From IMG/VR virus record IMGVR_UViG_3300009103_000001, positions 1 through 64,000 of that record: 64,000 nt of DNA; one strand, given 5' to 3'. Positions 7,543 through 64,000 of this stretch are shown in pieces; the first letter of the stretch is position 1; each line of letters opens with the position of its first letter. The position numbers were made by a program, and so were the translations under genes. The notes below the pieces were generated by a model. The model made no database searches. It was not told the origin of the DNA and saw only the letters and a list, made by a program, of their open reading frames with translations.

Positions 7543-8187
7543 GTGAAACATTTAGAACACATATTAAATAGAATAGTAGAAGAAGAAACTTTTAATGATT
7601 TATACCAAGTAAAAAATACTTGGGTAGAGATAGACCAAAGTGATAGGTCAAAATTAGAAAAAAAATTATGGTATTTAATAGATAATGCCTATAAAGTATT
7701 CCCAAAGGGACACCCCCGAATAAAGAGCCCCAGTGATATAACAAATGATTTAGAAATGTCTTTTTGGCGTGCATCTGACCATGATGATGACCCACATGCC
7801 GATATGGTTGTTTTTGGTAGAAAGACACCTGCAGGTATTAAAATTTCTGGAATTGGTCATGATGGGGAAATATTAAGTAGAAAAGAAGTTGTTAGACAAT
7901 GTGCTAATTTATTAAGACAACAGGGTTTTTGGGTTGAAGCTTCTGATAATTTAGCTAGAATATTATTACAATTACATAAAGTACCAACAGTAGAAACACC
8001 AGAGAAAGTTGAAAAAACTTTATATAAGCCAATAAAAAAGTGGTTAGGAACAGTAGAAGGTCAACCTGGATATGGTTGGTATATAAGAGATGTTGAGTAT
8101 ATGTCCAACTCTTATAACTGGAAGGATTCATTACCAGGTCGTAGAAACTATTTAACAAAGATACTTATAGGAAAGCCTAATGTATAA
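7543..8187 (+). CDS. Leader-family protein
   Basis: GTG start after GATATTTATA; N-term ...LNRIVEEE. Confidence 0.7.
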   Translation: MKHLEHILNRIVEEETFNDLYQVKNTWVEIDQSDRSKLEKKLWYLIDNAYKVFPKGHPRIKSPSDITNDLEMSFWRASDHDDDPHADMVVFGRKTPAGIKISGIGHDGEILSRKEVVRQCANLLRQQGFWVEASDNLARILLQLHKVPTVETPEKVEKTLYKPIKKWLGTVEGQPGYGWYIRDVEYMSNSYNWKDSLPGRRNYLTKILIGKPNV

Positions 8188-8960
8188 TGAAAAACTTAAT
8201 TAAAAAAATATTAAAAGAAGAGTTATCAGATGATGAGTTAAATTGGATTCGTGAAGTGGACCCTATAGCAGAGTTTGGTAGATACGTTGATGAAGAAAGT
8301 TCTCGTTATGGGTTTAAGGATGATTCTGATAGAGATTGGTTACGTTTAATAGATAATACTAAAGAATTTTTAGAAGAATTCGTTGATGAAACAAATATTC
8401 TTCAAAATTATGTAGAAAGTTTAAAGAGTTCAACGATGGGGTATCCAACTAGTAAAGCAACGGATACATTAAAGGCAATAGAAGAGATGTTGGGGGATGA
8501 AGATGGTCAATCATCATGGGATTATGTAGAATATTTTCATGATAATCAACATTATTTATGGACGTTTTTAAATAATTTTGGACATTATGCAAATAAACAT
8601 AATTTAACTTTAGTAGAAATGTTAAATTTAAGTCATACATATTTTGACCAAAAAGTTGATGATGATATTAAAAGGTCAGAATCATTAAGAGAATATAATG
8701 AATACGAAAAAAGGTCTACAACTGAAATGACAATGGGTCTATTACTACAGGCTGTGGATTCACTTAAAGATGCGTTAAGATATGTGGAATCAGCATTACA
8801 ATTCGCTTATCAAACAAATAATGAAGATTTAATTAGAGAATTAGAAGACATTAGAATGCATATTTCACATGATGATGGTGACCAAATTGGTTGGGAAGGT
8901 GACCAAACTCATGCAAATATTATTGGTAAGATAAAAGATGTAATAGAAAAATACAGTTAA
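8187..8960 (+). CDS. Leader-family protein, two modules
   Basis: MKNLIKKILKEE..DELNWIRE; internal LRE. Confidence 0.75.
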   Translation: MKNLIKKILKEELSDDELNWIREVDPIAEFGRYVDEESSRYGFKDDSDRDWLRLIDNTKEFLEEFVDETNILQNYVESLKSSTMGYPTSKATDTLKAIEEMLGDEDGQSSWDYVEYFHDNQHYLWTFLNNFGHYANKHNLTLVEMLNLSHTYFDQKVDDDIKRSESLREYNEYEKRSTTEMTMGLLLQAVDSLKDALRYVESALQFAYQTNNEDLIRELEDIRMHISHDDGDQIGWEGDQTHANIIGKIKDVIEKYS

Positions 8961-9404
8961 GTGAAAGATAGAATTAGAAAAATATTAAGAGAGGAAACCG
9001 AAAAACAACCAACAACTTATTATCTTATTGTTGATAAAAGAACTAATAAAGTAATGGACCCTGGTTTATGGAGAATAGGGTTTGAGAATTCGGGTGGTTC
9101 ATCTTATGGGACTTGGGGTATAGACTTCGGTGACCCAAAGTCAGTTGCTCAATACTCATTCAAAGATATGGATGAGATTGAAGAGGTGGTAGAGGATATT
9201 GAATTAGAAAAAAATGATTTAGAAGAAAGATTTCCATTAGATGATGAAGGTAAAAGAGCTTGGAATATACAAGAAGAGATTGATTATTATACTGAATTAT
9301 TACAACATTTAGAAGTTAGAGGGTTTAAATTAGCGGTAGAACCAATTAAAGTTGAAGACCCTTTTAAAAAATTATTTGGATATTCACCTTATGATGAAGA
9401 ATAG
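8961..9404 (+). CDS. Leader-family protein
   Basis: MKDRIRKILREE. Confidence 0.75.
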   Translation: MKDRIRKILREETEKQPTTYYLIVDKRTNKVMDPGLWRIGFENSGGSSYGTWGIDFGDPKSVAQYSFKDMDEIEEVVEDIELEKNDLEERFPLDDEGKRAWNIQEEIDYYTELLQHLEVRGFKLAVEPIKVEDPFKKLFGYSPYDEE

Positions 9405-9735
9405 AATTAAAAAAATATTGAAAGAAACTGATTTTGATTGGGTTAAGGATAACCCAATTAGTTCTAAAGAAATATATGTAATTCAATTTGATAAGGGTTG
9501 GGTTTTAGAACCAGACCCTAGAGGGGAATTTGGTTATTATGATATTAGAAATAAAAAGATTGGTGATTGGATTATGCATGTGGGATTTAATTCATTAGAA
9601 GAAGCCGGAGAATATTTAGAGTGGTATATATCAGGGAACCAAGAAGCGTATGAAGATGACATTAAAGACCTTGGCCACCCAAAGATAGTTAAATATAGAT
9701 TAAATTATATGTTAGAATTTATAGAAGAATATTAA
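9391..9735 (+). CDS. Leader-family protein
   Basis: MMKNRIKKILKETDFDWVKD (start moved from track 9352). Confidence 0.75.
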   Translation: MMKNRIKKILKETDFDWVKDNPISSKEIYVIQFDKGWVLEPDPRGEFGYYDIRNKKIGDWIMHVGFNSLEEAGEYLEWYISGNQEAYEDDIKDLGHPKIVKYRLNYMLEFIEEY

Positions 9736-10071
9736 ATGAAAGATAGAATTAGAAAAATATTGAGAGAGTCAGATTTTGATTGGACTAAAGAAAATACCAA
9801 CGAAGTGCCAATAAAAGATATTGAGGATTGGGTTGACAAAACTAGGTATGAAGTTGCTGGATGGATTCAAAAAATAGATGAATTTTATAAAAATGCTCCC
9901 CAAGTTGATTGGAGTATTAGGGGTGATATGGAAGAGGAAGATAAAATGTTAGCATTAACGGTTAAAGGTATTGGTGACGAATTAAGAAATATATATAGTA
10001 GTTTTGATTCCATAGATGATGAAATAGATTATCTCAGAAACCCAAAAATGTTTGACGATAATGAACTTTAA
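9736..10071 (+). CDS. Leader-family protein
   Basis: MKDRIRKILRESDFDWTKE. Confidence 0.75.
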   Translation: MKDRIRKILRESDFDWTKENTNEVPIKDIEDWVDKTRYEVAGWIQKIDEFYKNAPQVDWSIRGDMEEEDKMLALTVKGIGDELRNIYSSFDSIDDEIDYLRNPKMFDDNEL

Positions 10072-10082
10072 AAATAAAAAAA

Positions 10083-10577
10083 ATGAAAAGAATTAAATTA
10101 ACAGAACAACAATTTAAAAATATTTTAAACGAAGAAGATAAAAAAAATTATATGTTTTTTCAAAATCTAAATCAAATAAAAGGTCAAGTCGAAGAATTGT
10201 TATCAATGGATGGGTCTAAATTAGATAATATTTTATCGGATGGTCATGATTGGGCTTCGGACCATATTACAACAGCTAAAGATGATGTTGAAGAAGTTTA
10301 TCATTTTTTTAAACATGGTGAAACAATTAGAGAAAATAAGAGTGAACAAAAAGTAATACCGGAAGATTATAATAAAAAAGTATGGGAGTTTAGAATATCT
10401 TATAATAACGCGAAAGACAATCTAGAAGAAATTTTTAATGATATAATGGACACTGATGAGGTAACAGACCCTAATAAAGCTAAAGATATAATAATAGACC
10501 TTCTCCAACAAGTATATGATGAATATGTAGAAGATAACGATGAAGACAATAATTATACCCATAGCTTTGAATGGTAA
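10083..10577 (+). CDS. Leader-family variant protein
   Basis: MKRIKLTE...ILNEE; internal IRE. Confidence 0.7.
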   Translation: MKRIKLTEQQFKNILNEEDKKNYMFFQNLNQIKGQVEELLSMDGSKLDNILSDGHDWASDHITTAKDDVEEVYHFFKHGETIRENKSEQKVIPEDYNKKVWEFRISYNNAKDNLEEIFNDIMDTDEVTDPNKAKDIIIDLLQQVYDEYVEDNDEDNNYTHSFEW

Positions 10578-10589
10578 AATTTTAGAACA

Positions 10590-10871
10590 ATGATAAGAAA
10601 AATTATAATAGAAGAATTATTAAAGGAAGATTTTGATTTAATGAAAAATAGTGATATAAAAATATATGTATTAAAGTTTACTGATTATGATGGTAAGTAT
10701 GAAACAGATGTAGATACAAAGTATTTTGGTGATTATGATAAAGCTATTAAATATTTAGTAGATAATGGGTATGAAAAAAAAGATTGGCCAATTTATAACA
10801 ATGAATATGAACAATGGGGTAAAGATTATTCTTTATCAGCTAAATTATATACAAGAACATTAGAACAGTAA
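10590..10871 (+). CDS. Leader-family protein
   Basis: MIRKIIIEELLKEDFD. Confidence 0.75.
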   Translation: MIRKIIIEELLKEDFDLMKNSDIKIYVLKFTDYDGKYETDVDTKYFGDYDKAIKYLVDNGYEKKDWPIYNNEYEQWGKDYSLSAKLYTRTLEQ

Positions 10872-10879: not shown

Positions 10880-11218
10880 ATGAATTTAAGAAAAATCATA
10901 CGAGAAGAGATTGAACCCCCAACTAATATAGATTGGATTAAGGATAATCAATTTAACTACATGAAAAATATATCTGATGAAGAAATTAAAAAAATTAAAT
11001 TAGATGAACTAAGGTGGTTAGAGGATAGTGTGAATTGTTATGGTTTAAGTGATACTTTATTTACAAAAGTATCCAGATGGAACAAAGTTCCACTTAGATT
11101 ACACAACGGAGAAAAAATATATGTTGACGATGTTTTAATAGTTGATTATAGATGTAAAAAGAAACCCATGTCAGCTAATAATCATAGGGTGGTGGACCCT
11201 AATATATATGATATATAA
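10880..11218 (+). CDS. Leader-family protein
   Basis: MNLRKIIREE...IDWIKD. Confidence 0.75.
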   Translation: MNLRKIIREEIEPPTNIDWIKDNQFNYMKNISDEEIKKIKLDELRWLEDSVNCYGLSDTLFTKVSRWNKVPLRLHNGEKIYVDDVLIVDYRCKKKPMSANNHRVVDPNIYDI

Positions 11219-11862
11219 TGAACTTAAAGAAACTTATACGAGAAGAAATAGATGATTTTGATTGGGTTGATGATGCTAATCAGCTAGGGGATTCAGAGTT
11301 TAGAAAAGCTGTGTTTGATTTACAAATAGAAAGAATGAAAAAATCTTTGTACGGACATCAAGAACAGATTGCTTCATGGGTACAAAGTGGTGTTGATGAT
11401 TATGAATCTGATGGCGTTACCAAAATAGGAGAAAGAGATATCAAACAATGGTTAAGAGATGATGCTGGTGAATCAGATATTTTTATTCCTGACTGTTGGG
11501 TCAGTGATAGGTACTTTGAAGAAGAGTATATTGACCCATTGTGGCAAAAATTTTCAGATGACACTTATGATAAATATTTTGCACCGAATGCACCAATGGC
11601 CTATAAAATTGGGAGAGTAAATGAAGCTCATAATCTTTTAGAAGAAGATGACTTTGATTGGGATGAAGTTTTAAGAAATCAACGAAATGAAGAAGATGAT
11701 AAGTATTATAGACTTGAACAAGATTTTAGTGAGTGTATAAGAAACTTACAAGAAAAGTATTCTCAAGGTGAGAATAAGATTGGATATGATTCATATGCGA
11801 CAATAGATGTTATGAAACAAATATTGCCACAATTATTAGATGAAATGTTCCAAGAATTATAA
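11218..11862 (+). CDS. Leader-family protein, acidic
   Basis: MNLKKLIREEIDDFDWVDD; internal LLEEDDFDW. Confidence 0.75.
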   Translation: MNLKKLIREEIDDFDWVDDANQLGDSEFRKAVFDLQIERMKKSLYGHQEQIASWVQSGVDDYESDGVTKIGERDIKQWLRDDAGESDIFIPDCWVSDRYFEEEYIDPLWQKFSDDTYDKYFAPNAPMAYKIGRVNEAHNLLEEDDFDWDEVLRNQRNEEDDKYYRLEQDFSECIRNLQEKYSQGENKIGYDSYATIDVMKQILPQLLDEMFQEL

Positions 11863-12054: not shown

Positions 12055-15009
12055 TTGAGTAATTTGGTTAATAAAATATTGAGAGAGAATGCTTCAGAAA
12101 TTTATAAAATTTTTGAGGAAGCAGAATTTGACCCTTTTGGTCACATTATTGATAGTGCTAAAGAATCTGATGACCCAGAAGAATTAGATATTAATTTAGA
12201 AGAAGACTGTGTATTAGGTTTTTCAAATGGCAATTCAAAATTAGAGTGGCCTTATATTTCATTGCCTGCAGGGTATACCTGTCCTTTTGCTACTGTATGT
12301 AAAAATTTCCCCGCTAAATGGGAAGGACCGATTAAAGGTGGTAAATTTAAAAGACCATCTTCATGGGAGAAAAATGTTAAACCTGGTCCAGAAGCTAAAT
12401 TTATGTGTTATGCCGCAAGAGCACAAGGACAATATCCGGCAGCAAATGTACAAGTATTTAAAAACCTTAATCTTTTAAAATCAATGAAGACTAAAGAAAA
12501 AATGGCCAACCTTATTATAAAGTCAATGGAGTATCATGGTATAGACAATACAGATATATTTAGGATTCATGAGGCTGGTGATTTTTTTAATCAAGAATAT
12601 TTTGACGCATGGATTGAGGTCGCTAAGAAGATGCCACAGACATTATTTTATGCCTATACAGTGTCATTACCATTTTGGTTATCTAGAAGAAATGAGATAC
12701 CTAAAAACTTTAAATTGATTGCTTCTATGGATGAAAACAATGAACAAACAATATTAGATAATAATTTAAGATATTCAAAGGTGGTAAATGATGAGAATGA
12801 GGCTAAAGAATTGGGGTTACCTATAGATGTTGATGATATGGTAGCGTGGGGAACGGATGATAATTTTGCGTTACCTTTACATGGACCTCAACCAAAAGGT
12901 TCAGAAGCGGCTCAAGCACTTAAAAGAAATAAACAGTCTGGTTTATATGATAAAATAAAACAAGCCAAACAAACCAATCAAGCCAAAAAAAATACATTAA
13001 GAGATAAGTTAAGAAGAGAATTAAGGTCAGAATCTTTTATAAAAGAAAATGATTGGGATTGGGCAGAGTCAATATCAAACCCATTAGAGATTTCAGATGT
13101 CCCACAAAAGATTTGGATGTTGGATTTAACAAGAGAGGAACAGAAAAAAATATATGATTATTTAATTTCTTTAGGGTTTGAAGGAAATACAACTATTAAG
13201 GCTATTACCAAGTCAGATAAATATTTACAAAAATTAGCTGTTTTAATTTTAAATGTTGATAATAGGATTTATGTTGGTGATGAAGAGATTGTTGCTCTAT
13301 CAAGAGGCGAAGAAAAACCAAGACCAAAAGGAAAATTAGGTCATTTGTCTTTTTATAGTGGGGGTAAAGAGAGTCAACGAAAACAACACTTAGAACAATT
13401 AAAGGATTCTTGGGAAAATAGTTATGGTGGTTATTTAGAAATCGACCCAAAAGACTTATTAGATTTAGTCGATAATAACTTAAGTGAAGACATAAAGTAT
13501 ATGGCCGATAATGATGGTTTAGATTGGATAATGGATACTGAACCAAGTGATTTTGGTTATGGGGTTTATGACTCACTTAAAGATGCTGTTATATCACAAT
13601 TAGGTGATTACGATAATATTTCTATTGAAGACACCGTGGTGTTTGAAGGTGATAATTTTACTGTCTATAGGGTAGAGATACAATCAGGTCGTGAAATAGT
13701 AACATTAAAAAATAATAGAACTAATAAAAATTTTCAAATAGTTCTTCACAACCCAATTCCACCAGAGTGGGAAAAAGAGCTTCCACCTTTAGATGAAGAC
13801 CTAGAATATTGGGGTGTTAGGGGTGATAAAATGGGCCCTATAAAGGAAGATGATGAGGTAACATCATTAAAAGGACATAGAGACTATGATAATTGGGTTT
13901 TTATTCATAGAAATTTACATAGACCACCCTATTATTCAATTAAAGCAGGGAGAAGTGGGGGACCAGTCATTGGTTATGATACTGATATATGGTTAGAAGA
14001 TGTTACATTTAAAGTACAAGCAGGCGGAAGAGATAGGACTAGAAAAGAAATGAGAAAAAATGTTCATGCCGGTGTTGTGGGTAAAATTAAAGATTCTGGT
14101 GGTAGTTATGATACAAGTGGTTGGGTGTTGGTGACTTATAATCCATATCAACATGATTCATTCGTTGAATATGAAACTGGCATACCAATACATAACGCTA
14201 AAGAAGCAATATTAAAAAACGAAAAAGAAGTTTGGATAAAACAAGATAAAAATAATATAAATGAAGAATTCAGTTGGTTATTAACTGCTGGTGCCATTTT
14301 TTCACTCTATAAATTTTTTAAGGGAGCTCTTAAATCTAGAAATAATAGTAACCCAGAAGATGAAAAAATAAGAAGAAAATTATGGAATTTAAATATATAT
14401 ATTCGTGATTTTTTAAAAGATGGTGGTAAATTAAAATACGAAGAGAATCCTTGGTTCCACGTTTTTGAAATTGGTGAAGTAACTATAAAAATAAATAAAG
14501 AAAATAATACAATGTTTTGGACTAATTTGGTTCCAGGGAAATTTTTGAAGTATAAGCCAGGTAAAAGAACAGAATTTACTGACATTGGTTGGGATGAACA
14601 CGAATTTACAGAATCAATACAAATGTCCCAAGAAGAAATTGATGAATTAGTTAGTGCAATAAAAGAAGACTTAAAAGAAGATTTAAAAGAAAATAAAAGT
14701 GACTTTGATTGGGTGGATGATAGACCACAACCATCTACTGGTGAGATAGAATTAAAAGTATATTTAAAACCACATTGGTATGAGGGTAGGAATGAATATA
14801 TGTTATTAGAATGGATGATATCTTTTGAAAATATGGAACAATTTTTATCAGATGTGAAAGATTATGTGATTGAAGCTGTTGAAGGATATGATATACCATT
14901 AATGAATATAGGTATAAATGGTTGGGGAGCATTAAATAGATACCCCTCAGAAACAAAAGAATTAAAAGATGGTATAGCTAAAATAGTAAAAATGGCTAAA
15001 AAGTTATGA
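12055..15009 (+). CDS. Leader-family multi-module protein with Gp88-like Cys/Fe-S domain
   Basis: SLPAGYTCPFA..C...CYA...FRIHEAGDFF..EYFDAW...FYAYT; several I/L-x-E..DW linkers; KNVHAGVVG module. Confidence 0.7.
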   Translation: MSNLVNKILRENASEIYKIFEEAEFDPFGHIIDSAKESDDPEELDINLEEDCVLGFSNGNSKLEWPYISLPAGYTCPFATVCKNFPAKWEGPIKGGKFKRPSSWEKNVKPGPEAKFMCYAARAQGQYPAANVQVFKNLNLLKSMKTKEKMANLIIKSMEYHGIDNTDIFRIHEAGDFFNQEYFDAWIEVAKKMPQTLFYAYTVSLPFWLSRRNEIPKNFKLIASMDENNEQTILDNNLRYSKVVNDENEAKELGLPIDVDDMVAWGTDDNFALPLHGPQPKGSEAAQALKRNKQSGLYDKIKQAKQTNQAKKNTLRDKLRRELRSESFIKENDWDWAESISNPLEISDVPQKIWMLDLTREEQKKIYDYLISLGFEGNTTIKAITKSDKYLQKLAVLILNVDNRIYVGDEEIVALSRGEEKPRPKGKLGHLSFYSGGKESQRKQHLEQLKDSWENSYGGYLEIDPKDLLDLVDNNLSEDIKYMADNDGLDWIMDTEPSDFGYGVYDSLKDAVISQLGDYDNISIEDTVVFEGDNFTVYRVEIQSGREIVTLKNNRTNKNFQIVLHNPIPPEWEKELPPLDEDLEYWGVRGDKMGPIKEDDEVTSLKGHRDYDNWVFIHRNLHRPPYYSIKAGRSGGPVIGYDTDIWLEDVTFKVQAGGRDRTRKEMRKNVHAGVVGKIKDSGGSYDTSGWVLVTYNPYQHDSFVEYETGIPIHNAKEAILKNEKEVWIKQDKNNINEEFSWLLTAGAIFSLYKFFKGALKSRNNSNPEDEKIRRKLWNLNIYIRDFLKDGGKLKYEENPWFHVFEIGEVTIKINKENNTMFWTNLVPGKFLKYKPGKRTEFTDIGWDEHEFTESIQMSQEEIDELVSAIKEDLKEDLKENKSDFDWVDDRPQPSTGEIELKVYLKPHWYEGRNEYMLLEWMISFENMEQFLSDVKDYVIEAVEGYDIPLMNIGINGWGALNRYPSETKELKDGIAKIVKMAKKL

Positions 15010-15476
15010 AAAATCTAATTAGAAAAATATTAAAAGAAGCGAGAGAACCCATAAATGGGTATTCTATACCTAATAAGTGGATTGACGGCAATAAGTTACA
15101 AACTTTTGAATCTAAAGGTATTAAATATCGTGTAATATATCCTTGGGACAATGAAAGAAATGGTAGAATAGTTATGCAAGTAATACCTTATGATGGTAAA
15201 GATATAGCTATTTATGATGAATATAAGAAGGTATCAAATAATCCTTATGCTCAAGAAAAATATTATGAAGATGGTACAATATATGAATGGACCAAAGAAA
15301 GTGGTGAAAAATTATTCAATCAATTAAATTCTTTTGTTGGTTCTAACCATGATTGGTATGTACATAAATTTGAAGAAGAATTTGGGTTAATTATTTATAT
15401 AGGTATGAATATTTTTGAACTGGTTGAAGATTTTTTACATATAGCTGATGATGGAGACCCATTTAATAAATTATAG
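15006..15476 (+). CDS. Leader-family protein
   Basis: MKNLIRKILKEA. Confidence 0.75.
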   Translation: MKNLIRKILKEAREPINGYSIPNKWIDGNKLQTFESKGIKYRVIYPWDNERNGRIVMQVIPYDGKDIAIYDEYKKVSNNPYAQEKYYEDGTIYEWTKESGEKLFNQLNSFVGSNHDWYVHKFEEEFGLIIYIGMNIFELVEDFLHIADDGDPFNKL

Positions 15477-19553: not shown

Positions 19554-21026
19554 ATGGGTAATGTTAAAAAAATAATCAAAAAACTTTTAGTAGAAGTGGC
19601 AGGAATATCTTTCGAGGTTAGAAAATGGTCTAACATAATAGGTAATTATGTAGATAATGTATATGCAGAAGAAAAAAAGAAATTAGAAAAAGAAAGTAAT
19701 GATAAACCACAACAATCAAAAAGTTGGGGTAGTACAACACCTTCGTATAATGATTTTGATTATGACGCATCATTAGGCTTCACACATTTTCAACATGATA
19801 AAGATGCTGATGTTCACGAATATGATAGAATAGTAGATGAAGCTTATCTTTATGCTGATGAATTACAGGTTACACCAGACGCTAGACATGAATGTCCTAA
19901 CATAGATAAGGCTATATCTGGTATTTTATTAAAAATAACTTTAGATGGGGTGGGTGGTATAGATGTAGAATCAGCTCAAGGGTCTAAATTAGATGATTCT
20001 TTTATTGATTGTGTTATTGAATTAGTAGAAGACCATATGGTTTCTGGACAAGATTTTTATGACATGAGTTATAATACTTTACACGCAATGAGGGAAGATG
20101 AGGAAGATTTTGGTTGGACATTCCCTAAATATGATAGTAAAAATAAAAAATGGTGGGAAATAGATAGAAGTAGTTATGGTGGTTATGGTGGTTACAGTGG
20201 TTACAAACGTTTAATTCCAGATATTAAAAAAATAGAGATAAATGGTAAAGATTATCCTGAAGCTTATAAAGATTTTAGTGTTGATAAGTGGGTTATAGAA
20301 GATTCTTATAGAACTGAATATGACCATTGGAAGTCTGGTTATAATGATGAGGGTGAATATATTGTATATTTAAATATGAGTATTGGGCCTAATTTTGGTG
20401 GCTCAGCCTTAACACACGAAATTAAACATGCTTATGATGATTGGAATAGGATGAGACATGGTGGTAAACCTATCAGAGATTCTTGGGAAATCCAAAACAT
20501 ATATACAAAGGATTTTGAAAAATTAGTTTTAGGTGCTGGTCGTGATTTAAATCAAGCATTAACTTCAATTATAAGATATTATTATTTGGGTTCAAATTTA
20601 GAAACGCCAGCGTATCTTGAGAATGAATATGATAATGTATCATTTATGGGAAATTATCGTGAAACAGCTAAAAAATTAATGAATTTTAAAGCTAAAAACT
20701 ATATGAAAGAAAATGGTGAACCAGCTAAAGGTTTACAAGAATCTTGGGAAAAGTTAATAAAAGAATTTGATATACCACTTTTTAGAAAATTTAAAAATGT
20801 TATTAATTTTTTAGAATATACAGAAAAATATTTTAATAAAAGAGGTAGAAATATATTAAAACGTATCGATAAGATGAGGTATGTTCACGATAAACCAGAA
20901 CCTAAACCAGTAGTTGGTAAATGGAAAAGTAAGAGTTGGGATGATTATAAAAAAGAAATAGAGAATAATCGAAAAGATAATAATCGAAAAGATAATAATC
21001 AAAACCAATTAAAATTACCATTTTAA
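19554..21026 (+). CDS. Leader-family protein with HExxH zincin-like motif
   Basis: MGNVKKIIKKLLVE; ALTHEIKHAYD; later ETPAY. Confidence 0.65.
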   Translation: MGNVKKIIKKLLVEVAGISFEVRKWSNIIGNYVDNVYAEEKKKLEKESNDKPQQSKSWGSTTPSYNDFDYDASLGFTHFQHDKDADVHEYDRIVDEAYLYADELQVTPDARHECPNIDKAISGILLKITLDGVGGIDVESAQGSKLDDSFIDCVIELVEDHMVSGQDFYDMSYNTLHAMREDEEDFGWTFPKYDSKNKKWWEIDRSSYGGYGGYSGYKRLIPDIKKIEINGKDYPEAYKDFSVDKWVIEDSYRTEYDHWKSGYNDEGEYIVYLNMSIGPNFGGSALTHEIKHAYDDWNRMRHGGKPIRDSWEIQNIYTKDFEKLVLGAGRDLNQALTSIIRYYYLGSNLETPAYLENEYDNVSFMGNYRETAKKLMNFKAKNYMKENGEPAKGLQESWEKLIKEFDIPLFRKFKNVINFLEYTEKYFNKRGRNILKRIDKMRYVHDKPEPKPVVGKWKSKSWDDYKKEIENNRKDNNRKDNNQNQLKLPF

Positions 21027-25522: not shown

Positions 25523-25779
25523 TTCGTAAAATAATAAAAGAAGAACTATTAAAAGAGTTAGATATGAGTATTGAAAGAGGTTTATTATCATATTTAATGA
25601 TAAATTATGAAACTATGGATAATAGTTTTACAAAGAGACATGGTGATGGTGAAGAATGGTTCACAAAAGAAGAAATGATAAAACACATACAAACAAAGTT
25701 TAAAGTTAATAAAGATATGGCAACAAACATTATAGAAGCTTATTTAGAATCTGAAAATAATAAGAATTTTGGTGTTTAA
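25519..25779 (+). CDS. Leader-family protein
   Basis: MIRKIIKEELLKE. Confidence 0.7.
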   Translation: MIRKIIKEELLKELDMSIERGLLSYLMINYETMDNSFTKRHGDGEEWFTKEEMIKHIQTKFKVNKDMATNIIEAYLESENNKNFGV

Positions 25780-46951: not shown

Positions 46952-47038
46952 AATTTTTTTACTAATCCACATATAAATTTAACCCTATTATGAATACTCA
47001 TAACAGGGGCTTTTCTTACAAGAACGATATTTATGATT

Positions 47039-47359
47039 ATGAAACTAAAAAGAATAATAAAAGAATCCATATTAGATAACTGGTTTAGAAAGAATACACT
47101 TAAAACCCTTATAAACAGAAGTGCTTATTCTTATAATATGCATGATGTTATAATTAAAAAAGGTGATGATATAATTATATGGTTAAAACCATTTCCCAAA
47201 AGCAGTTATAGTGAAGAAGACCAACAATATGTATTAAACACAGAAAATGAAACTTTATCAGTATATGGAAGAGGATTAAATAATGAACCTGATTCAATAT
47301 ATAATTTATCAGAAAAAGAATACCATGATATATTCAATAAAATATATCATTTAATATGA
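47039..47359 (+). CDS. Leader-family protein
   Basis: MKLKRIIKES after GATATTTATG. Confidence 0.75.
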   Translation: MKLKRIIKESILDNWFRKNTLKTLINRSAYSYNMHDVIIKKGDDIIIWLKPFPKSSYSEEDQQYVLNTENETLSVYGRGLNNEPDSIYNLSEKEYHDIFNKIYHLI

Positions 47360-47805
47360 ATATAAGAAGAATCATAAGGGAAGAAATGGATAACCATATA
47401 ACCAAAGTTATATTAGATACCATTAATGAATATGATATGGACCCTTATGATATTAATAATGATTTATGTGAAGATTTCACAATGGATGTAATTAATAAAA
47501 TGGGAGGATATAACGATAATTTATATGAATTATCTGATGATATGATTTCTAATTTTAGAGACCCAAAATATGCGTTAGATTACTGGGATGGAGAATTAAT
47601 AGAAACACCTTATGGCGTATGGAGCAAAAATGGGTTAGATAGATATGGATACCCTCCCATTCCTTTAAAAGATATTAAAGAAGAATTTAATCATGTATGG
47701 ATATATTACAATGGAAAACATTATGATGCAGAAGAACCTTATGGAGTTAATAACTGGACCGAATTGCCAATGATTAAAAGACAATTAAACTTATATAATA
47801 TATGA
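47356..47805 (+). CDS. Leader-family protein with papain/transglutaminase-like Cys-His-Asp motif
   Basis: INNDLCEDF...HVWIYYNGKHYDAE; paralog of 56979. Confidence 0.7.
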   Translation: MNIRRIIREEMDNHITKVILDTINEYDMDPYDINNDLCEDFTMDVINKMGGYNDNLYELSDDMISNFRDPKYALDYWDGELIETPYGVWSKNGLDRYGYPPIPLKDIKEEFNHVWIYYNGKHYDAEEPYGVNNWTELPMIKRQLNLYNI

Positions 47806-48806
47806 AATCAACAATAAGAAGAATCATAAGGGAAGAAATGGATGGTCTGGAATGGATTAAAAATGTTCAATCCAATCAGGACATTGCACAAGAGATTGCT
47901 GATGAAACAGAGGTAGATGATAATAAAAGAAAAATATATTTTCCCTTTTCCACCCCTTTCCCTCACTCTCTTTCTTTTTCTCTTCCTTTCTTTTCTTCAC
48001 ATTGTAAAAAAGTATATGGATTAAATGATGATGATATAAAAGATATATGGAAAAGATATAAGAAGATGGTTATGGATAAAATAAATGACCATAATAATCT
48101 TAATGAGAATGATGAATTAAAATGGATAAAAGATGTTCAATCCAATCAGGACATTGCACAGAAAATTGCTGATGAAACAATTATTGACTATGACTATAAA
48201 ATATATGCACCCTCCTTACCCAAATACCCTTTTCCACCTTTCCCACCAAATAAACCAATACGTTCCTTTCATGCTTATTGTGAAGAACAATATGGATTAA
48301 ATGATGATGATATAAAAGATGTATGGAATAGATATAAGAAACTTATTACAGATAAAATTAATGACTATAGGGAAAATTTATTCTCCACTAATGCTTTTAA
48401 TGAATCACCCAATATTAATGAATCCAATGACCTACAATGGATTAAGGATATTAGGTCAATTAAAATAGATGATTGTTTAAAGGTTAGTGGAAACTACACC
48501 TTTTCAAAGGATGATGAAGGAGAAATAACACATTGGCTACATCGTCCATGGACATATATTGTAAAAGATATTAAAAATAACAATTTAGGGGATTATTTAC
48601 TTTTAGAAATTATTTATACTGATTTACCAACTAACCGGAGAAGTACATATTTAATTACAAAATCATTAAAAGAAGTTATAGATGCTATAGAAAGAGGTTA
48701 TTTAAAATTTTGTGATAACCCTAAAAAACGAGATGAGTTTCAAGATGAAATAAATAGTGATTTATATCCTGGTAATATGGGAGATGAAATGTCTGCACCT
48801 AGATAA
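47802..48806 (+). CDS. Leader-family protein, 3 modules (first two duplicated)
   Basis: VQSNQDIAQ.IADET...YGLNDDDIKD.W.RYKK twice. Confidence 0.8.
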   Translation: MKSTIRRIIREEMDGLEWIKNVQSNQDIAQEIADETEVDDNKRKIYFPFSTPFPHSLSFSLPFFSSHCKKVYGLNDDDIKDIWKRYKKMVMDKINDHNNLNENDELKWIKDVQSNQDIAQKIADETIIDYDYKIYAPSLPKYPFPPFPPNKPIRSFHAYCEEQYGLNDDDIKDVWNRYKKLITDKINDYRENLFSTNAFNESPNINESNDLQWIKDIRSIKIDDCLKVSGNYTFSKDDEGEITHWLHRPWTYIVKDIKNNNLGDYLLLEIIYTDLPTNRRSTYLITKSLKEVIDAIERGYLKFCDNPKKRDEFQDEINSDLYPGNMGDEMSAPR

Positions 48807-48815: not shown

Positions 48816-49190
48816 ATGAATATAAGAAGAATCATAAGGGAAGAAATAAATGACTTTGATTGGGCTGAAAATCATATAGAGGTTGGGAAATGTTTCAAAA
48901 AACTTTCCAGCAACTACAGAAAAGAAGGGGGTTGGTTAATCGATGAACCTAATGAAAACTATACAGTTAAAATAATTGATATAAAACAAGGTAAAGAACT
49001 TCACAATAAAGGCAAATGGATAGATATCCCTAAAGGTTCATTTGATGAAAGAGCAGTTATAATAAAGTTCGCCAGACCTGAGATGAAGAGAACTGGATAT
49101 ACAAATTGGACAGGTGATATTGAGTTATATTACTCTAATGTTCAAGAATGGCTTAATGATGGGTGGTTAGTGCCTACAGAATGTGAATAA
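48816..49190 (+). CDS. Leader-family protein
   Basis: MNIRRIIREEINDFDWAEN; IEVGKCF module. Confidence 0.78.
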   Translation: MNIRRIIREEINDFDWAENHIEVGKCFKKLSSNYRKEGGWLIDEPNENYTVKIIDIKQGKELHNKGKWIDIPKGSFDERAVIIKFARPEMKRTGYTNWTGDIELYYSNVQEWLNDGWLVPTECE

Positions 49191-49770
49191 AAACAAGATG
49201 TCAAAGAACTTAAGAAATATAGTTAAAAGAATACTGAAAGAATCAGAATTAGATTGGTTCTCAGATATGAATATCGATAAGATAAAAGTGGGTGCTAAAT
49301 TTAACGTCAATGGCTCCTTTACAGGAACTTTTATAATTAATGAGATACTTTGGAATGAGAAGTTTCCTATGCATACTGAGGTTAACTATGAAGGTATTGA
49401 TTATAGTGGTTCCAAATTTAAGAATAGTGTTAGAATTAAAGATTTTTTAAGATGGTTAGACAATGGAATAATAGTACCCATAGAAAGAACACTAAAAGAA
49501 GCAGAATTCGATTGGTTCTCAGATATGAATATAGATAAGATAAAAGTTGGTGCTAAATTTAAATCTGTTAAACATTTGGATTTCCAAACAGGGGATGCAG
49601 GAACTTTTATAATTGATGAGATACTTTGGAATGAGAGGTCTCTTATGCATAGTGCAGTTAAGTATAGTGGTGTTGATTATAGAGGTTTCAAGTTTTTAGA
49701 TTGGGTCATAGTTAAAGATTTTTTAAGATGGTTGGATGATGGAACAATAGTACCTATAGAAGATAAATAG
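49183..49770 (+). CDS. Leader-family protein, 2 duplicated modules
   Basis: LKE(S/A)E.DWFSDMNIDKIKVGAKF twice. Confidence 0.78.
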   Translation: MNKNKMSKNLRNIVKRILKESELDWFSDMNIDKIKVGAKFNVNGSFTGTFIINEILWNEKFPMHTEVNYEGIDYSGSKFKNSVRIKDFLRWLDNGIIVPIERTLKEAEFDWFSDMNIDKIKVGAKFKSVKHLDFQTGDAGTFIIDEILWNERSLMHSAVKYSGVDYRGFKFLDWVIVKDFLRWLDDGTIVPIEDK

Positions 49771-52036: not shown

Positions 52037-52702
52037 ATGCGTAAATCAATCAAAAAAATATTAAGTGAAAACGAATGGGAATGGGTTAATAAGATAGAAC
52101 CTAAACTAACTAAAGACCTAATCTTATGCTCTAACCATGAAAGGTTTAATCCAGGTTGTATGGAAATACTAAATGTATCGAATAGAATAGTATACACGAA
52201 ATCCTTAGAGACTGGTAACCGTTACGCAGACCCTATAGCAGATGTTATGAGGTGGTTAACTGATGGTGATTATCTACTAATGGATGGAACAGGAGAACTG
52301 GTAATACCATTAAAAGAATCAGATGATATGGACTGGATAAGAGATGTGGACCCAATGGTATCATTCGAAGACATTCATAAGGATAACTACCCACTTAGAA
52401 GAGATAGAACTTTTGACGGCTATGATTTAAAATTTGGTGTGAAGATTAAAAACTTGGATGCTATTATAGAAATGACAATGGATTGTAATGGTGATGAAGG
52501 AGAATGGATTGAGGATATTGCATGGTGTATAGTTGTGAATAGTAGCTACTTAAACCATCAAGATGTATACTGTGTTACCTCTCCAAAATATACATGGGAA
52601 GGACAAAGGGCTTGTTTGGATGTATACTTCTACGATAAAAATAATGTTAACATAGCCGACTACTGGGTATCAGATGATATGATTGAGTTATATTATCTGT
52701 GA
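52037..52702 (+). CDS. Leader-family protein, 2 modules
   Basis: MRKSIKKILSENEWEW; LKESDDMDWIRD. Confidence 0.75.
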   Translation: MRKSIKKILSENEWEWVNKIEPKLTKDLILCSNHERFNPGCMEILNVSNRIVYTKSLETGNRYADPIADVMRWLTDGDYLLMDGTGELVIPLKESDDMDWIRDVDPMVSFEDIHKDNYPLRRDRTFDGYDLKFGVKIKNLDAIIEMTMDCNGDEGEWIEDIAWCIVVNSSYLNHQDVYCVTSPKYTWEGQRACLDVYFYDKNNVNIADYWVSDDMIELYYL

Positions 52703-57817: not shown

Positions 57818-57853
57818 TAAAAAAACTTTGTATAATTAACGATATTTATTAAT

Positions 57854-58144
57854 ATGAATATCAAGAAAATTATAAGGGAAGAAATCGATTTAAATTGGGT
57901 TAAAGATATCAGTCCTGATAATGCCACCATAAAGGATTTGGAAGTGGGAATGAATGTTATACCAAGCTGTAATAGTTTGGGTTTATTTGATATATCATAT
58001 GCTGTAGCTGAAATACATGAACATACTGAGGGAAACTATGATGAGGGTTCTTGTGTGTTATTATATCCCAACACTGAAAACACAGAGTATAATGTATTAT
58101 ATTTATGTGAACACTTAAACTGTAGTTTTAAAATATTAACCTAA
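57854..58144 (+). CDS. Leader-family protein
   Basis: MNIKKIIREEIDLNWVKD; module resembles the first module of 38925. Confidence 0.75.
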   Translation: MNIKKIIREEIDLNWVKDISPDNATIKDLEVGMNVIPSCNSLGLFDISYAVAEIHEHTEGNYDEGSCVLLYPNTENTEYNVLYLCEHLNCSFKILT

Positions 58145-61383: not shown

Positions 61384-61410
61384 ACAACCATCATTAAGAT
61401 ATTTATTGAT

Positions 61411-61791
61411 ATGAACATAAAAAAGATAATAAAAGAAGAATTAGAATGGATTAAAAAAATCGAACCAAAATATATGCCAAAAAAAGATGAGTTGATTGAG
61501 GTTAGGTACGAAAATAAAGATTCTTTTTTACAATGGATTGGTTCATTTAAAACACCTTATTTAAGTGGTAAGTTTGGTAAATACATTAAAGGGCGTGTTG
61601 TAGACATATCTGATAATTTCTTCTTATTAGTGGTAAAAGATACAACTGGAAATCATGGAATATATTTCCCAACAATAACCGATAACATTGAATGGACAAA
61701 ACCATATTGGCCAACTAGTGGGGTAGGTGGACCACCTAAAGGTATATATGTTGAAGATATTGGTCTTAGATATGTACCACTATCGTCTTAG
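61411..61791 (+). CDS. Leader-family protein
   Basis: MNIKKIIKEELEWIKK; module resembles the fourth module of 44058. Confidence 0.75.
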   Translation: MNIKKIIKEELEWIKKIEPKYMPKKDELIEVRYENKDSFLQWIGSFKTPYLSGKFGKYIKGRVVDISDNFFLLVVKDTTGNHGIYFPTITDNIEWTKPYWPTSGVGGPPKGIYVEDIGLRYVPLSS

Positions 61792-62258: not shown

Positions 62259-62312
62259 AATTATTAATTATAATAAAATATTTTTAAATCGTAAAGATAT
62301 TTATATATAACT

Positions 62313-62861
62313 ATGGATATAAGAAAAATCATAAAAGAGGAAATGGAATCTAAAAATATAGGATATGAAGATATTGTATATGAAGATGATAACCTAATAG
62401 TTATATATCCAAAAACAAGGGAAGCTTCATGTAATTATGGTGAAGACACAAATTGGTGTACAGCAGCTGAAGGTGGACAATCTTTCCATGAATATAATGA
62501 TAAAGGTAACTTATATTATCATATATGGAAATTTAAAATGCCTAATAATAAACAAAACTATCAAAAAATTGCTAGATTCATTGAATATGGTAAAGAATAT
62601 GGTGAACTTGGTGATTTTTTCTTATTTGATGATAGTCAAGTGGATAAGTATGAAATATTATTTAATATTTTAAATGGTAAAAAATTAAAGGAGGGTGGTT
62701 TTGAGTATCCAGCAGAGTTAAAACCATTAAATGATTCTTGGGAAAAAGCTTTTATTGCTGTTGATACACATTATGCAAAAAATGGTTTACACAAAACACC
62801 AACATATACGGAACCCGATATAGAAGATTTATGGGATGACGATTATGAAGAATTTTTCTAG
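62313..62861 (+). CDS. Leader-family protein with C-x-YG-x2-T-x-WC domain
   Basis: MDIRKIIKEE; PKTREASCNYGEDTNWCTAA. Confidence 0.75.
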   Translation: MDIRKIIKEEMESKNIGYEDIVYEDDNLIVIYPKTREASCNYGEDTNWCTAAEGGQSFHEYNDKGNLYYHIWKFKMPNNKQNYQKIARFIEYGKEYGELGDFFLFDDSQVDKYEILFNILNGKKLKEGGFEYPAELKPLNDSWEKAFIAVDTHYAKNGLHKTPTYTEPDIEDLWDDDYEEFF

Positions 62862-62950
62862 TGTAAATTGACTTTTATAGTCAATAACTTATATTTATAT
62901 AGTAGACCAACCAATTAGGTACACACCTTAATCAATAATTAAAAATTATT

Positions 62951-63070
62951 ATGAGAAATTACGACCCAAACGATAAACCTTGCTTTGATGGTGATATTTA
63001 TGAAGATTTTATAGATGAAATCCCAGAAGAAGATATTTATTATAATATAGATGATTCTTTTGAATATTAA
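62951..63070 (+). CDS. 39 aa acidic peptide (not in track)
   Basis: 14 of 39 residues D/E; TTGACT-16-TATATT upstream. Confidence 0.4.
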   Translation: MRNYDPNDKPCFDGDIYEDFIDEIPEEDIYYNIDDSFEY

Positions 63071-63390
63071 AAAAACATAATCATAAGAGATATAAGACCA
63101 TATACTGATACTAAAGACCTAGAGGTAGGTAAAAGATATATTGCCTATGATATAGGTAATGATGAACTTCATGGTGAACCTTTTATTGTTTTAAAAAAAA
63201 ATGAAAGTATAGATAATATACAAATTCACATCAAATGGCTTAATATGAATAGAGGTACTATCATAACAGAAAAATCTATAGGAAATTGGGAACCAATATT
63301 TAGACCTAGTATGGAGTGGATGTGGTTCTATAGATAATTTAATTCACACAACTTTATTGGATATTTATTATTAATAATATATTTATTGAT

Positions 63391-64000
63391 ATGGATATTA
63401 AATTATTATTAGAAAGAATTATACTTACTGAAGGTAGGGTTGAGAATGCTAGAAAAAAATATCCTAATATACCAGATAAAATTTTTGATTATTACGTAGA
63501 TAATGACCCATCTGGTAATCAAAAGTACCTTAATTGGGTTTTAAAAACTATAACAGCTGATTGGGGTATTACACAAACATCACATTTTAGACAAAATCAT
63601 TCTGAGTTATTAGATAGTTTAACATTCTTCCATGAAAATAACCAAGCGTTTAATAAAAAAGATATAAATCATTATAAAAATTTAACTATGTTTTTCCAAA
63701 CCATTGCTGAGGTTAGGGAAAAGGTGAGACAAAAAAAGGAAGAAAAAAAGGCTAAAAAACAAAGAAACCTTGTTTATCAAGATAAGGATTGGGTTGTAAT
63801 ATCACCTAAATCACATTTAGCTTCTTGTGTTTATGGTTCTGGTACAAAATGGTGTGTTACAATGAAAGATTATTCACATCATTGGGATAGATATTCTAAA
63901 AACGCAACATTCTTTTTTATAATAGATAAAAATAAAGATGATTCGGATAACCTATATAAAGTCGCTTTTAGAAAAATAGGTAGAAGTGGTAAGGTTGAAT
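63391..64000 (+). CDS. C-x-YG-x-GT-x-WC family protein (runs off window end)
   Basis: MDIKLLLERIILTEG...DPSGNQKYLNW...PKSHLASCVYGSGTKWCV. Confidence 0.8.
   Translation, partial: MDIKLLLERIILTEGRVENARKKYPNIPDKIFDYYVDNDPSGNQKYLNWVLKTITADWGITQTSHFRQNHSELLDSLTFFHENNQAFNKKDINHYKNLTMFFQTIAEVREKVRQKKEEKKAKKQRNLVYQDKDWVVISPKSHLASCVYGSGTKWCVTMKDYSHHWDRYSKNATFFFIIDKNKDDSDNLYKVAFRKIGRSGKVE

Follow-up and report, generated by a model that had tools for sequence, protein, structure and literature searches.

Twenty-five open reading frames (ORFs) in the viral DNA analysed here begin with the pattern M-x(1-3)-[IL]-[KR]-[KR]-I-[IL]-[KR]-E-[ES], and in most of them this leader continues into a tag of acidic and aromatic character, D-[FL]-x-W-[IV]-[KR]-D. 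Judging from sequence, we favor, at somewhat better than even odds, the view that these elements are T4-type capsid-targeting propeptides and internal head-protease sites, and that the polyproteins bearing them would be cut to small modules in the prohead. Both the leader and the junctions carry the cut-site pattern of the head protease; the approximately 30 leader proteins, otherwise unannotated, are therefore probably loaded into the capsid and cut there, and perhaps also delivered to the host by injection. The DNA studied (the “window”), bases 1-64000, is part of a 210-kb IMG/VR contig (IMGVR_UViG_3300009103_000001) from a large, uncultured, distant T4-like phage of Bacteroidota.

The leader and the genes that carry it

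A profile (A1) built from 27 N-termini was used to search the six-frame translation of the window (i-E<0.01). It yielded 30 matches, 25 of them at or within 22 residues of an ORF start and five internal, and no match when the residues of these 483 segments were shuffled, in any of 20 rounds. Five further ORFs, at 7543, 10083, 19554, 24800 and 63391, bear weaker variants that A1 leaves unscored. An initial annotation had proposed about 30 proteins with a common leader, a number that the 25 strong and five weaker ORFs bear out; all six N-termini that it quoted were located (at 8187, 9736, 10880, 42173/44058, 47356/48816 and 52037). As it also stated, most members lie in two clusters, 7543-15476 and 37886-49770. 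Altogether, the leader-bearing ORFs encode about 7,500 amino acids, or roughly one-third of the window. The members of the first cluster are:

7543..8187, + strand: weak variant MKHLEHILNRIVEEE, opening the cluster; read directly, unscored by A1
8187..8960, + strand: leader and tag (tag at 8235); i-E 1.7e-8; no Pfam or PHROG family
8961..9404, + strand: leader only, without the W tag; i-E 5e-6
9391..9735, + strand: leader and tag, the leader Met lying within a longer TTG-ORF (9352-9735); i-E 3e-8; L-K-E at residue 12 before DFDW
9736..10071, + strand: leader and tag; i-E 1.1e-9; L-R-E at residue 11
10083..10577, + strand: variant like the long head-module (class-B, L044) leader (IKLTE...NILNEE); read directly
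10590..10871, + strand: leader MIRKIIIEELLKEDFD; i-E 2.5e-7
10880..11218, + strand: leader and tag; i-E 7e-11
11218..11862, + strand: leader and tag; i-E 4e-11; I-R-E at residue 9
12055..15009, + strand: 984-aa member, leader and internal tags at 13051 and 14701; i-E 3.5e-5; junctions IKE331 and LKE879
15006..15476, + strand: leader only; i-E 9.5e-5

The attached proteins had been described as unrelated. This is apt for the first cluster, whose protein bodies have no mutual similarity, but not for the second, whose members have module families in common (BLASTP); many modules are paralogous. For example, the member at 42173 has one module in common with those at 48816 and 44058. The second cluster consists of:

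37886..38818, - strand: leader and tag, GTG start at 38818, junctions at 38503 and 38170; i-E 4.6e-10, internal 3e-3; VNE103, INE215
38925..41177, + strand: 750-aa multi-module protein, junctions at 39573, 40140 and 40398; i-E 7e-12 and 8e-8; INE213, INE404, IKE489; a full internal leader runs from 40098 at the 40140 junction
41168..41485, + strand: leader and tag, single module; i-E 1.3e-12
41475..42167, + strand: leader and tag, module family F0 (from clustering); i-E 2e-8
42173..42988, + strand: leader and tag, junction at 42665; i-E 1.4e-11; VNE162
42996..44039, + strand: leader and tag, with two more tags inside, at 43392 and 43719; i-E 1.9e-9; LNE239
44058..45806, + strand: 582-aa multi-module protein, junctions at 44406, 44694, 45039 and 45408; i-E 2.8e-9; IDE114, INE210, INE325
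47039..47359, + strand: leader MKLKRIIKES; i-E 2.8e-5
47356..47805, + strand: leader only; i-E 1.1e-6
47802..48806, + strand: leader, F0, junction at 48114, F0, junction at 48429, third module; i-E 8.5e-10; LNE102, INE207
48816..49190, + strand: leader and tag, single F4 module (F4 also internal in 44058 and 42173); i-E 1.4e-11
49198..49770, + strand: leader and tag, duplicated module, junction at 49504; i-E 2.3e-7 and 1.5e-4; LKE101

Other members lie between or beyond the clusters:

19554..21026, + strand: weak variant MGNVKKIIKKLLVE, HExxH at residue 288; adjoins the phage DnaK gene on its upstream side
24800..25522, + strand: weak variant …ITRNILLEEFDD; read directly; AATATTTAT ends 4 nt 5' of the ATG
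25519..25779, + strand: leader MIRKIIKEELLKE, a type shared with head-module gene L044:5013; i-E 7e-6
52037..52702, + strand: leader and tag, junction at 52325; i-E 7.8e-7; LKE94
57854..58144, + strand: leader and tag, single F3 module; i-E 4.9e-13
61411..61791, + strand: leader and tag, single F1 module; i-E 6.4e-8
62313..62861, + strand: leader only; i-E 7.3e-5; PHROG families of unknown function
63391..64000, + strand: weak variant MDIKLLLERIILTE, read in L007/L132; the gene extends beyond the window to contig position 64839

Of the attached domains named initially, the zincin motif is present, as the HExxH of weak-leader ORF 19554-21026, but the Cys-His-Asp enzyme and the Fe-S-like domain lack Pfam support. 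Pfam matches in the 984-aa member are to GP88 and Phage_L5_gp82.

The leader genes have a late-type promoter-like motif, GATATTTAT, in common with structural genes. The window holds 14 copies against 4.3 expected, a number reached in none of 100 shuffles. The motif ends 3-18 nt 5' of leader-gene starts and likewise of the starts of the genes for a gp13-like neck protein, the large terminase and a putative portal; no copy lies within 60 nt of the capsid or protease genes. Leaders are absent from a block of small genes that another upstream motif precedes. Copies near members are:

7530..7538, + strand: ends 4 nt 5' of the 7543 start codon
19540..19548, + strand: ends 5 nt 5' of the 19554 ATG
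38837..38845, - strand: precedes the minus-strand member 37886-38818
38910..38918, + strand: precedes 38925
47026..47034, + strand: ends 4 nt 5' of the 47039 ATG
57841..57849, + strand: ends 4 nt 5' of the 57854 ATG
61398..61406, + strand: ends 4 nt 5' of the 61411 ATG
62296..62304, + strand: ends 8 nt 5' of the 62313 ATG
63360..63368, + strand: precedes 63391

Internal junctions and shuffled modules

The leader is bipartite: the tag that follows the predicted cut shows as much conservation as the segment before it. The N-terminal leader of 10-14 residues described initially is real, but the conserved element spans about 20-25 residues in most members, extending into D-[FL]-x-W-[IV]-[KR]-D..P, and it also serves as an internal junction. 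Within longer proteins, the tag recurs, preceded by [IL]-N-E-S, between modules of about 90 residues in shuffled order. Module families that stand alone in genes with a full leader recur inside longer proteins, following INES.

The element is virus-restricted. The leader pattern was found in 41 stretches of viral contigs versus three in genomes, all three without the tag, and the junction DNA pattern had no match across 185,579 species genomes. No cultured phage in GenBank has these modules. Among 1.84 billion representative proteins, 466 match the leader profile (E<=1e-3). In the best 150 of these, the match begins within the first 20 residues in 148 matches, and 80 proteins hold 2-5 copies of the element. 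Of 148 N-terminal copies, 96% have [IL]-x-E 2-5 residues before the tag, as do 68% of 165 internal copies; at random positions of the same proteins, the figure is 3%. INE|S and LNE|S are the forms seen most often internally; the strict tripeptide is missing at about one-third of internal junctions. As a caveat, [IL]-x-E is a short pattern, and the proteome is rich in I, N, K and E.

BLAST sorts 334 modules into 165 clusters. AlphaFold models of two members, 47802-48806 and 44058-45806, reach pLDDT values of 80-94 in the modules, and the leader and every predicted junction lie in segments below 50; in 47802-48806, the modules reach 83-94 and the value dips below 50 at residues 101-103 (N-E-N). 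The junctions are predicted to be flexible linkers between confidently modelled modules. Fold searches with the modules returned no matches, and a Pfam search of 36 long family members gave a single match, a phage lysozyme domain at the end of one protein.

Could the nucleic acid, rather than the protein, be what is conserved? An A-rich 5' coding start for translation in a host that lacks Shine-Dalgarno pairing, or a recombination junction for module shuffling, might be envisioned. The mRNAs do look nearly leaderless, because the promoter-like motif ends 3-8 nt 5' of many start codons, and the modules are clearly shuffled at the junctions. However, synonymous codon variation in the leader and tag is similar to that elsewhere in the genome, and substitutions are conservative in protein terms (K/R via AAA, AGA and CGA; I/L; GAC/GAT; Trp invariant). 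This synonymous variation, with the interchange of K/R and I/L, indicates that selection acts on the protein. Moreover, internal copies lie away from translation starts, and shuffling may result from the repeated junction without being its function. We regard conservation for the sake of the nucleic acid as highly improbable.

Head protease, capsid and head-module genes

The initial annotation had called for a search for a gp21-like protease. Such a gene exists: the region at 103-112 kb of the contig includes genes for a T4 gp21-type protease (Peptidase_S77) and for a capsid protein of gp23 type. The protease matches the PHROG “head maturation protease” (E 1e-41) and retains the catalytic His and Ser columns in an alignment with T4 gp21. 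The T4 enzyme cuts after L/I-X-E, and the first 10 residues of IPIII are enough for packaging (PMC9026906). In alignment with T4 gp23, which is cleaved at L-T-E65|A, the capsid protein of this phage has L-I-N-E60|T at the cleavage site, and that column reads [ILM]-x-E in 81 of 81 capsid proteins (this phage's and those of 80 relatives fetched), as INE in 53, LNE in 12 and LTE in 12. The junction tripeptide is the same as that at the predicted capsid-protein maturation site.

Around the genes for protease, scaffold and capsid, seven small proteins begin MKKIIKLNENDIENLVKKIIKE[ED] (a KKIIKE[ED] core), and one begins MGLIRKIIKEELLKE. Two class-A leader genes lie directly 3' of the capsid gene, an arrangement that is syntenic in contig L037. 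Among the 80 capsid-protein relatives, class-A leaders occur within 10 kb of the capsid gene at only two loci; the link at the level of the clade therefore rests on a subclade.

These observations bear on the idea of a module-boundary or docking peptide with no relation to the capsid, for instance a linker plus a handle for a common partner, in which [IL]-x-E would be coincidental. The residues with the strongest conservation (D, F/L, W, I/V, D) do follow the putative cut, each module has one tag, as a handle might, and the tripeptide is not universal at internal junctions. Nevertheless, we judge this idea distinctly unlikely, given that [IL]-x-E, at its fixed spacing from the tag, is enriched some 20- to 30-fold, that it recurs at the aligned maturation site in 81 capsid sequences, and that the motif is also found on head-module proteins and under the promoter-like motif of structural genes.

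Another idea invokes chaperones. The contig encodes a DnaK (21510-23366) and a ClpB-like ATPase (at about 86 kb), for which the leader could be a recognition tag that aids the folding or handling of many newly acquired proteins. DnaK favors hydrophobic cores with flanking basic residues, and [KR][KR]II[KR] resembles this preference. However, internal junctions keep [IL]-N-E-S and the acidic tag without any basic-hydrophobic core, acidic residues immediately follow the core of the leader, and both the match to the capsid maturation site and the occurrence on head-module proteins would go unaccounted for. This is the least probable of the explanations considered.

Under the propeptide interpretation, an N-terminal amphipathic basic helix of about 10 residues ending in I-[KR]-E would act like the T4 capsid-targeting propeptide, directing the protein to the prohead core as it assembles, where small proteins of the core itself carry the same KKIIKE[ED] segment. 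The identity of the motifs suggests that the gp21-family serine protease of this phage would cut after the Glu of [IL]-x-E at the leader and likewise at every internal [IL]-N-E|S junction. Given these predicted cuts, the long members would be polyproteins from which modules of about 90 residues are released in the head. Each would retain an N-terminal D-[FL]-x-W-[IV]-[KR]-D tag, which may be a P'-side protease determinant or a handle for retention or ejection. The T4-like reading offered initially is consistent with the protease, the capsid I-N-E, the head-module KKIIKE[ED] and the promoter-like motif; it leaves the conserved tag unexplained and has to be revised to take in the internal reuse of the element.

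Entry into the prohead and cutting there need not imply cargo. The proteins could be scaffold or core filler, degraded and expelled like T4 gp22, gp67 and gp68, with nothing injected. KKIIKE[ED] leaders take their most regular form on small proteins encoded beside the protease and scaffold genes, and review text describes T4 core proteins as being cut to fragments that leave the head. We nonetheless consider filler unlikely: the modules are predicted to fold into compact domains, their diversity and shuffled order suit effectors better than structural filler, and a phage lysozyme domain lies at the end of one family member.

Relation to known packaged proteins

The closest parallels to the proposed propeptides are T4 IPI, IPII, IPIII and Alt, in which a short [IL]-x-E propeptide likewise precedes otherwise dissimilar proteins. 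T4 also has the gp21-family protease, the gp23-family capsid protein and the same class of tripeptide at the maturation site. There are differences. The leader has no sequence match in the T4 head region scanned, nor was it found in the scanned head region of Flavobacterium phage immuto or in bases 1-50000 of Tenacibaculum phage PTm1. Only here does the element extend past the cut into a predicted retained acidic-aromatic tag, which the T4 model neither predicts nor explains, and only here is it reused internally, so that many members look like polyproteins. The scale also differs: here, 64 kb hold about 30 such genes and the representative clusters number 466, versus three Ips in T4. At least ten Ips have been reported in T-even phages, and these proteins have only an N-terminal leader in common (PMC12373910). 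As far as the T-even ip loci of Repoila et al. 1994 are described where cited in PMC12373910, they too are fast-changing gene clusters marked by an N-terminal signal; the present loci differ in their chained, shuffled modules of about 90 residues and in belonging to a Bacteroidota-associated clade known from metagenomes alone.

The inner-body and ejection proteins of phiKZ-like giant phages (phiKZ, 201phi2-1 and SPN3US) are also comparable. A gp21-related protease cuts them at several sites; as is proposed here, there are many paralogous head proteins with multiple cuts each, after a Glu that follows a two-residue motif, and the propeptides are thought to target the prohead. However, their motif is S/A-x-E, their propeptides are long (over 100 aa), and the capsid protein and protease of this phage are closer to those of T4 proper. 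None of their Pfam families was found in the proteins of this phage that were searched.

Polyvalent proteins of phages and conjugative elements, as reportedly described by Iyer, Burroughs, Anand, de Souza and Aravind in 2017, are long chains of unrelated small domains that are believed to enter the recipient with the DNA and to be cut up; they are reportedly recognized by known enzymatic domains, often with an embedded peptidase. By contrast, the modules here match no known family, and their uniform junction motif is one that suits the separate head protease.

If the modules behave like Ip1-3 of T4, they would be retained in the head once it is filled with DNA and would pass into the host together with that DNA. 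Ip1-3 are injected and inhibit GmrSD restriction enzymes (PMC12373910). By analogy, the modules of this phage, if they are injected, could plausibly serve as counter-defense or takeover factors.

The leader shared by window proteins

By direct reading, all six N-termini quoted in the initial annotation were found where it had placed them. The leader that they exemplify is real, with 30 matches to A1, a profile of 27 such N-termini, but it is longer than the 10-14 residues described, its consensus running on into an acidic-aromatic tag that follows the predicted cut. From the A1 alignment and wider matches, the consensus is M-N-I-[KR]-[KR]-I-I-[KR]-E-E-[IML]-[DN]-D-[FL]-[DQ]-W-[IV]-[KR]-D-x-x-P. 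In a six-frame translation of the window, 25 of the A1 matches lie at ORF starts and five are internal; looser versions of the leader occur on five more window ORFs. On 20 residue-shuffles of window segments A1 found no match, and this result, the invariant Trp and the fixed spacing rule out chance or low complexity as the source of the leader.

The first part of the leader is an amphipathic helix (median hydrophobic moment 0.69). Across the leader and tag, synonymous codon changes occur, and K/R and I/L are exchanged via different codons, which argues that constraint acts on the protein. Given this synonymous variation and these conservative substitutions, it is very unlikely that the element is a signal at the level of RNA or DNA.

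The class-A leader, the form matched by A1, has 36 profile matches in the first 124 kb of the contig, 30 of them within the window. Because no match to a strict DNA pattern for the leader lies beyond contig 124 kb, another large cluster there is unlikely. A 686-aa protein encoded at contig 66725-68785 (L007:10064-12124) begins with MSKTKINNNDFEWAKDIP; the tag and an I-N-N-N pre-sequence are present but the basic helix is not, so that this may be a leader of intermediate form.

Against 1.84 billion representative proteins, A1 gave 466 matches at E<=1e-3; among the best 150 of these, 148 matches start no later than residue 20, and 2-5 copies are present in 80 proteins. In the databases searched, the leader family did not turn up outside viral contigs and unnamed metagenome proteins. 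In bacterial genomes, the junction pattern (the tag preceded by [IL]-N-E-S inside long proteins) had 0 matches and the leader pattern three, none of them with the tag. A tblastn search of 50,697 GenBank phage records with a seven-module relative returned no match, and A1 likewise gave none in the head region of Flavobacterium phage immuto, in bases 1-50000 of PTm1 or in the T4 region of genes 20-24 (best i-E 0.36). Capsid, protease or terminase genes 67-81% identical to those of this phage are present on other leader-bearing contigs. Of 80 capsid relatives, only two have class-A leaders at a distance of up to 10 kb from the capsid gene; the family may be limited to a subclade, or it may be sited far from the head genes as in this contig.

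Head genes, promoter-like motifs and predicted processing

A T4-like head module occupies contig 103-112 kb and encodes a Gp23 capsid protein, a Peptidase_S77 protease and, at ~108.8-110.0 kb, an acidic scaffold-like protein. The initial annotation had left a gp21-like protease to be located in the genome; one is present, with its catalytic His and Ser kept.

Contig 104.2-105.0 kb: prohead protease of the gp21 family (Peptidase_S77, PF03420); PHROG 207 'head maturation protease', E 1e-41

In an alignment with T4 gp21, no variation is seen in the His (ELNHPE) or the Ser (GISSRG) column. The capsid protein is of the gp23 type (PF07068), and L-T-E65|A of T4 gp23 aligns with L-I-N-E60|T of this phage, which is the predicted maturation site. 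The capsid column at the T4 cleavage site is [ILM]-x-E in 81 of 81 proteins (this phage and 80 relatives), mostly I-N-E, and I-N-E is the tripeptide common to this column and the module junctions. Further, of 148 N-terminal copies of the tag, 96% have [IL]-x-E 2-5 residues ahead of them, as do 68% of the internal copies, versus 3% at random positions. In the A1 alignment, the leader fits a propeptide of ~10-20 residues that ends in L/I-x-E on otherwise dissimilar proteins. Beside this agreement between leader, junctions and capsid column, the reading of the element as a junction or docking peptide with no role at the capsid is improbable.

T4 gp21 cleaves after L/I-X-E, and 10 N-terminal residues are enough for IPIII to be packaged; of these, 4 and 7 are required for targeting, and 8 and 10 for processing (PMC9026906). 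Seven small proteins encoded around the protease, scaffold and capsid genes of the present phage start MKKIIKLNENDIENLVKKIIKE[ED], and an eighth starts MGLIRKIIKEELLKE. Two class-A leader genes directly follow the capsid gene, a layout repeated in contig L037 from another sample.

The best-supported reading of the leader/junction element, and one that we consider probable from these sequence comparisons, is a T4-type system that combines propeptide targeting, processing by the head protease and likely delivery with the DNA. A short amphipathic propeptide would drive entry into the prohead core and would be removed after I-x-E by the gp21-type protease, which would also cut the internal [IL]-N-E|S junctions. 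The freed modules would be kept in the head and probably delivered along with the DNA.

The late-type promoter that had been proposed for these genes is plausible at the level of the motif, since GATATTTAT precedes leader genes and, elsewhere in the contig, a gp13-like neck gene, the large terminase gene and a putative portal gene. The window holds 14 copies versus 4.3 expected; no copy lies within 60 nt of the capsid and protease genes.

Sites of GATATTTAT
Window 7530
Window 19540
Window 31589
Window 38837, minus strand
Window 38910
Window 47026
Window 57841
Window 61398
Window 62296
Window 63360
Contig 77489
Contig 95595
Contig 97698

Because GATATTTAT ends only 3-18 nt ahead of leader-gene start codons, many transcripts of the late type would have almost no 5' untranslated region. 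A possible reader of this motif is the ECF-type sigma factor (Sigma70_r2 and r4_2) that the contig encodes at L134:6217-6756. Twelve small minus-strand genes at 46-56 kb (window 53341-55862 and 46180; 42-96 aa) have AACCAAAACAAAG directly abutting the ATG, where a 13-nt AACCAAAA[CA][AG]AAG is found. None of the twelve carries the leader, and the set looks like a separate expression or cassette class, probably early. In the related contigs L006, L022 and L032, tblastn recovers the large terminase homologue as two pieces ~1.5 kb apart, a split that suggests an intron, intein or homing-endonuclease insertion.

Modules, junctions and attached domains

The long relatives are chains of modules, each opened by ...[IL]-[NEK]-E-S-[DN]-D-[FL]-x-W-[IV]-[KR]-D..P, and the long window members are built in the same way. 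When 180 proteins were cut at their tags, 334 modules resulted (median 93 aa), which fell into 165 BLASTP clusters, including 117 singletons. The recurrent module families occur in any position or order, and also as single-module genes with the full leader. The attached proteins had been described as unrelated. This description holds for the first cluster (window 7543-15476), where similarity among the bodies was not detectable, but the proteins of the second (37886-49770) are partly paralogous, as judged from BLASTP and the recurrence of shared module families.

Two AlphaFold models (47802-48806 and 44058-45806) were built with homologue alignments. In the first, two modules of the F0 family have pLDDT values of 83-94, whereas the leader helix (residues 2-14) and tag are at ~50; the sole dip below 50 between the modules is at residues 101-103, N-E-N. 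In the second, low-confidence segments (10-14, 103-119, 206-225, 324-356 and 394-453) cover every predicted junction. Since the junctions fall in low-pLDDT segments between confident modules, they look in these models like exposed linkers between independently folded beads. A fold search with the 47802 model against the PDB and BFVD gave nothing significant.

F0 (window 47802-48806 and 41475-42167; alignment A4) has two well-conserved halves around a hypervariable, Pro-, Ser-, Phe- and Leu-rich insert, the length and sequence of which differ in nearly all of 35 homologues. With only four proteins found in a homologue search, 48816-49190 could not be usefully aligned. Just downstream of member 52037-52702, at window 52700-52850, is a 69-bp tandem repeat (2.2 copies, 86% identity).

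Searches of Pfam and PHROGs with all window members yielded only GP88 and L5_gp82, on 12055-15009, and PHROGs of unknown function; Pfam searches of 36 long relatives found one C-terminal phage lysozyme and nothing else. The initial annotation had listed a Cys-His-Asp enzyme and an Fe-S-like domain among the attached domains, and neither is supported by any family or motif in Pfam and motif searches. The zincin motif is present, but as a single case, on one weak-leader member without a Pfam match.

Window 20415-20429: HExxH (HEIKH), residues 288-292 of ORF 19554-21026, a 490-aa protein with a weak leader and no Pfam family

A 145-aa ORF and then the DnaK gene come directly downstream of this ORF. 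Both DnaK (window 21510-23366) and a ClpB-like AAA+ protein (L134:7435-9912, contig ~85.7-88.2 kb) are encoded by the phage; in bacteria, DnaK and ClpB are the two halves of a disaggregase pair. A tag by which these phage chaperones recognize the proteins is the most improbable account of the element among those considered. Expendable filler of the prohead core is an unlikely role for proteins with this modular build. As a tentative possibility, the proteins could form a combinatorial library of injected mini-proteins, in which shuffled ~90-aa modules, encoded singly or as polyproteins, would enter the prohead on one shared propeptide, be cut within it by the protease at [IL]-N-E|S and each retain an N-terminal acidic-aromatic tag acting in head retention or tail exit.

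Phage, host and relation to known systems

The contig (JGI Ga0117901_1000010, IMGVR_UViG_3300009103_000001; 210,157 bp) supplies the window as its bases 1-64000, with 29% G+C and short, densely packed genes. These genes encode DnaK, a thymidylate-synthase-like protein, a NUDIX protein and proteins with Bacteroidota-type signal peptides, one of which carries a type-9-secretion sorting domain. The closest cultured-phage relatives of the capsid protein are from Flavobacterium phage immuto and a Microcystis phage (~40% identity). On the strength of the signal peptides, the sorting domain and these capsid relatives, the host is probably a member of Bacteroidota. Several genes for the secreted-looking proteins lie at window 2967-5465 and 31604-34701, and one product combines MAM domains with the C-terminal sorting domain. 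Contig 64-103 kb (L132, L135) has auxiliary genes unusual for a phage, encoding glutamine synthetase and SET-domain, sulfotransferase, CAP-domain and OmpA-like proteins; the N-terminus of the last, MKRIILKESQLK..., is similar to the long head-module leader.

The precedent for this system is found in the internal proteins and variable ip loci of T-even phages, whose members share only a leader. Ip1-3 of T4 block different GmrSD restriction enzymes (PMC12373910; PMC5694885). The T4 targeting sequence quoted in the initial annotation shares with the present leader only a pattern of hydrophobic positions and the terminal [IL]-x-E. Further, the T4 model leaves unexplained the conservation past the predicted cut, namely the retained acidic-aromatic tag with its invariant Trp. 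Unlike in T4, the same element here links modules into polyprotein-like chains, and the leader family is very large. Inner-body proteins of the phiKZ type differ in having S/A/G-x-E sites, long propeptides and PF12699-type paralog families, as opposed to [IL]-x-E and leaders of ~10 aa; phiKZ-like inner-body Pfam families were absent from the 30 window members and the 36 long relatives. Polyvalent proteins are chains with recognizable enzymatic or anti-defence domains, usually including an embedded peptidase, whereas the family described here offers only the one lysozyme in its long members and the one HExxH in a weak member.

Capsid-delivered proteins act in the host ahead of any phage gene expression, and to our knowledge they are not recognizable from sequence outside a few model phages. 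If the leader, junction and tag mark head-packaged proteins, they would tell where the products of about one-third of the window and of several hundred protein clusters of uncultured T4-like Bacteroidota phages are located, and when these are likely to act. The unannotated ~90-aa modules would then be candidate counter-defence or host-takeover factors, and a polyprotein with uniform junctions would offer a tailed phage a new means of organizing and diversifying its cargo. The short leader could serve as a packaging handle for engineered phages of Bacteroidota hosts. If the proteins do constitute a mini-protein library, the tag would be a sequence signature with which hundreds of capsid-delivered effectors could be listed from metagenomes.
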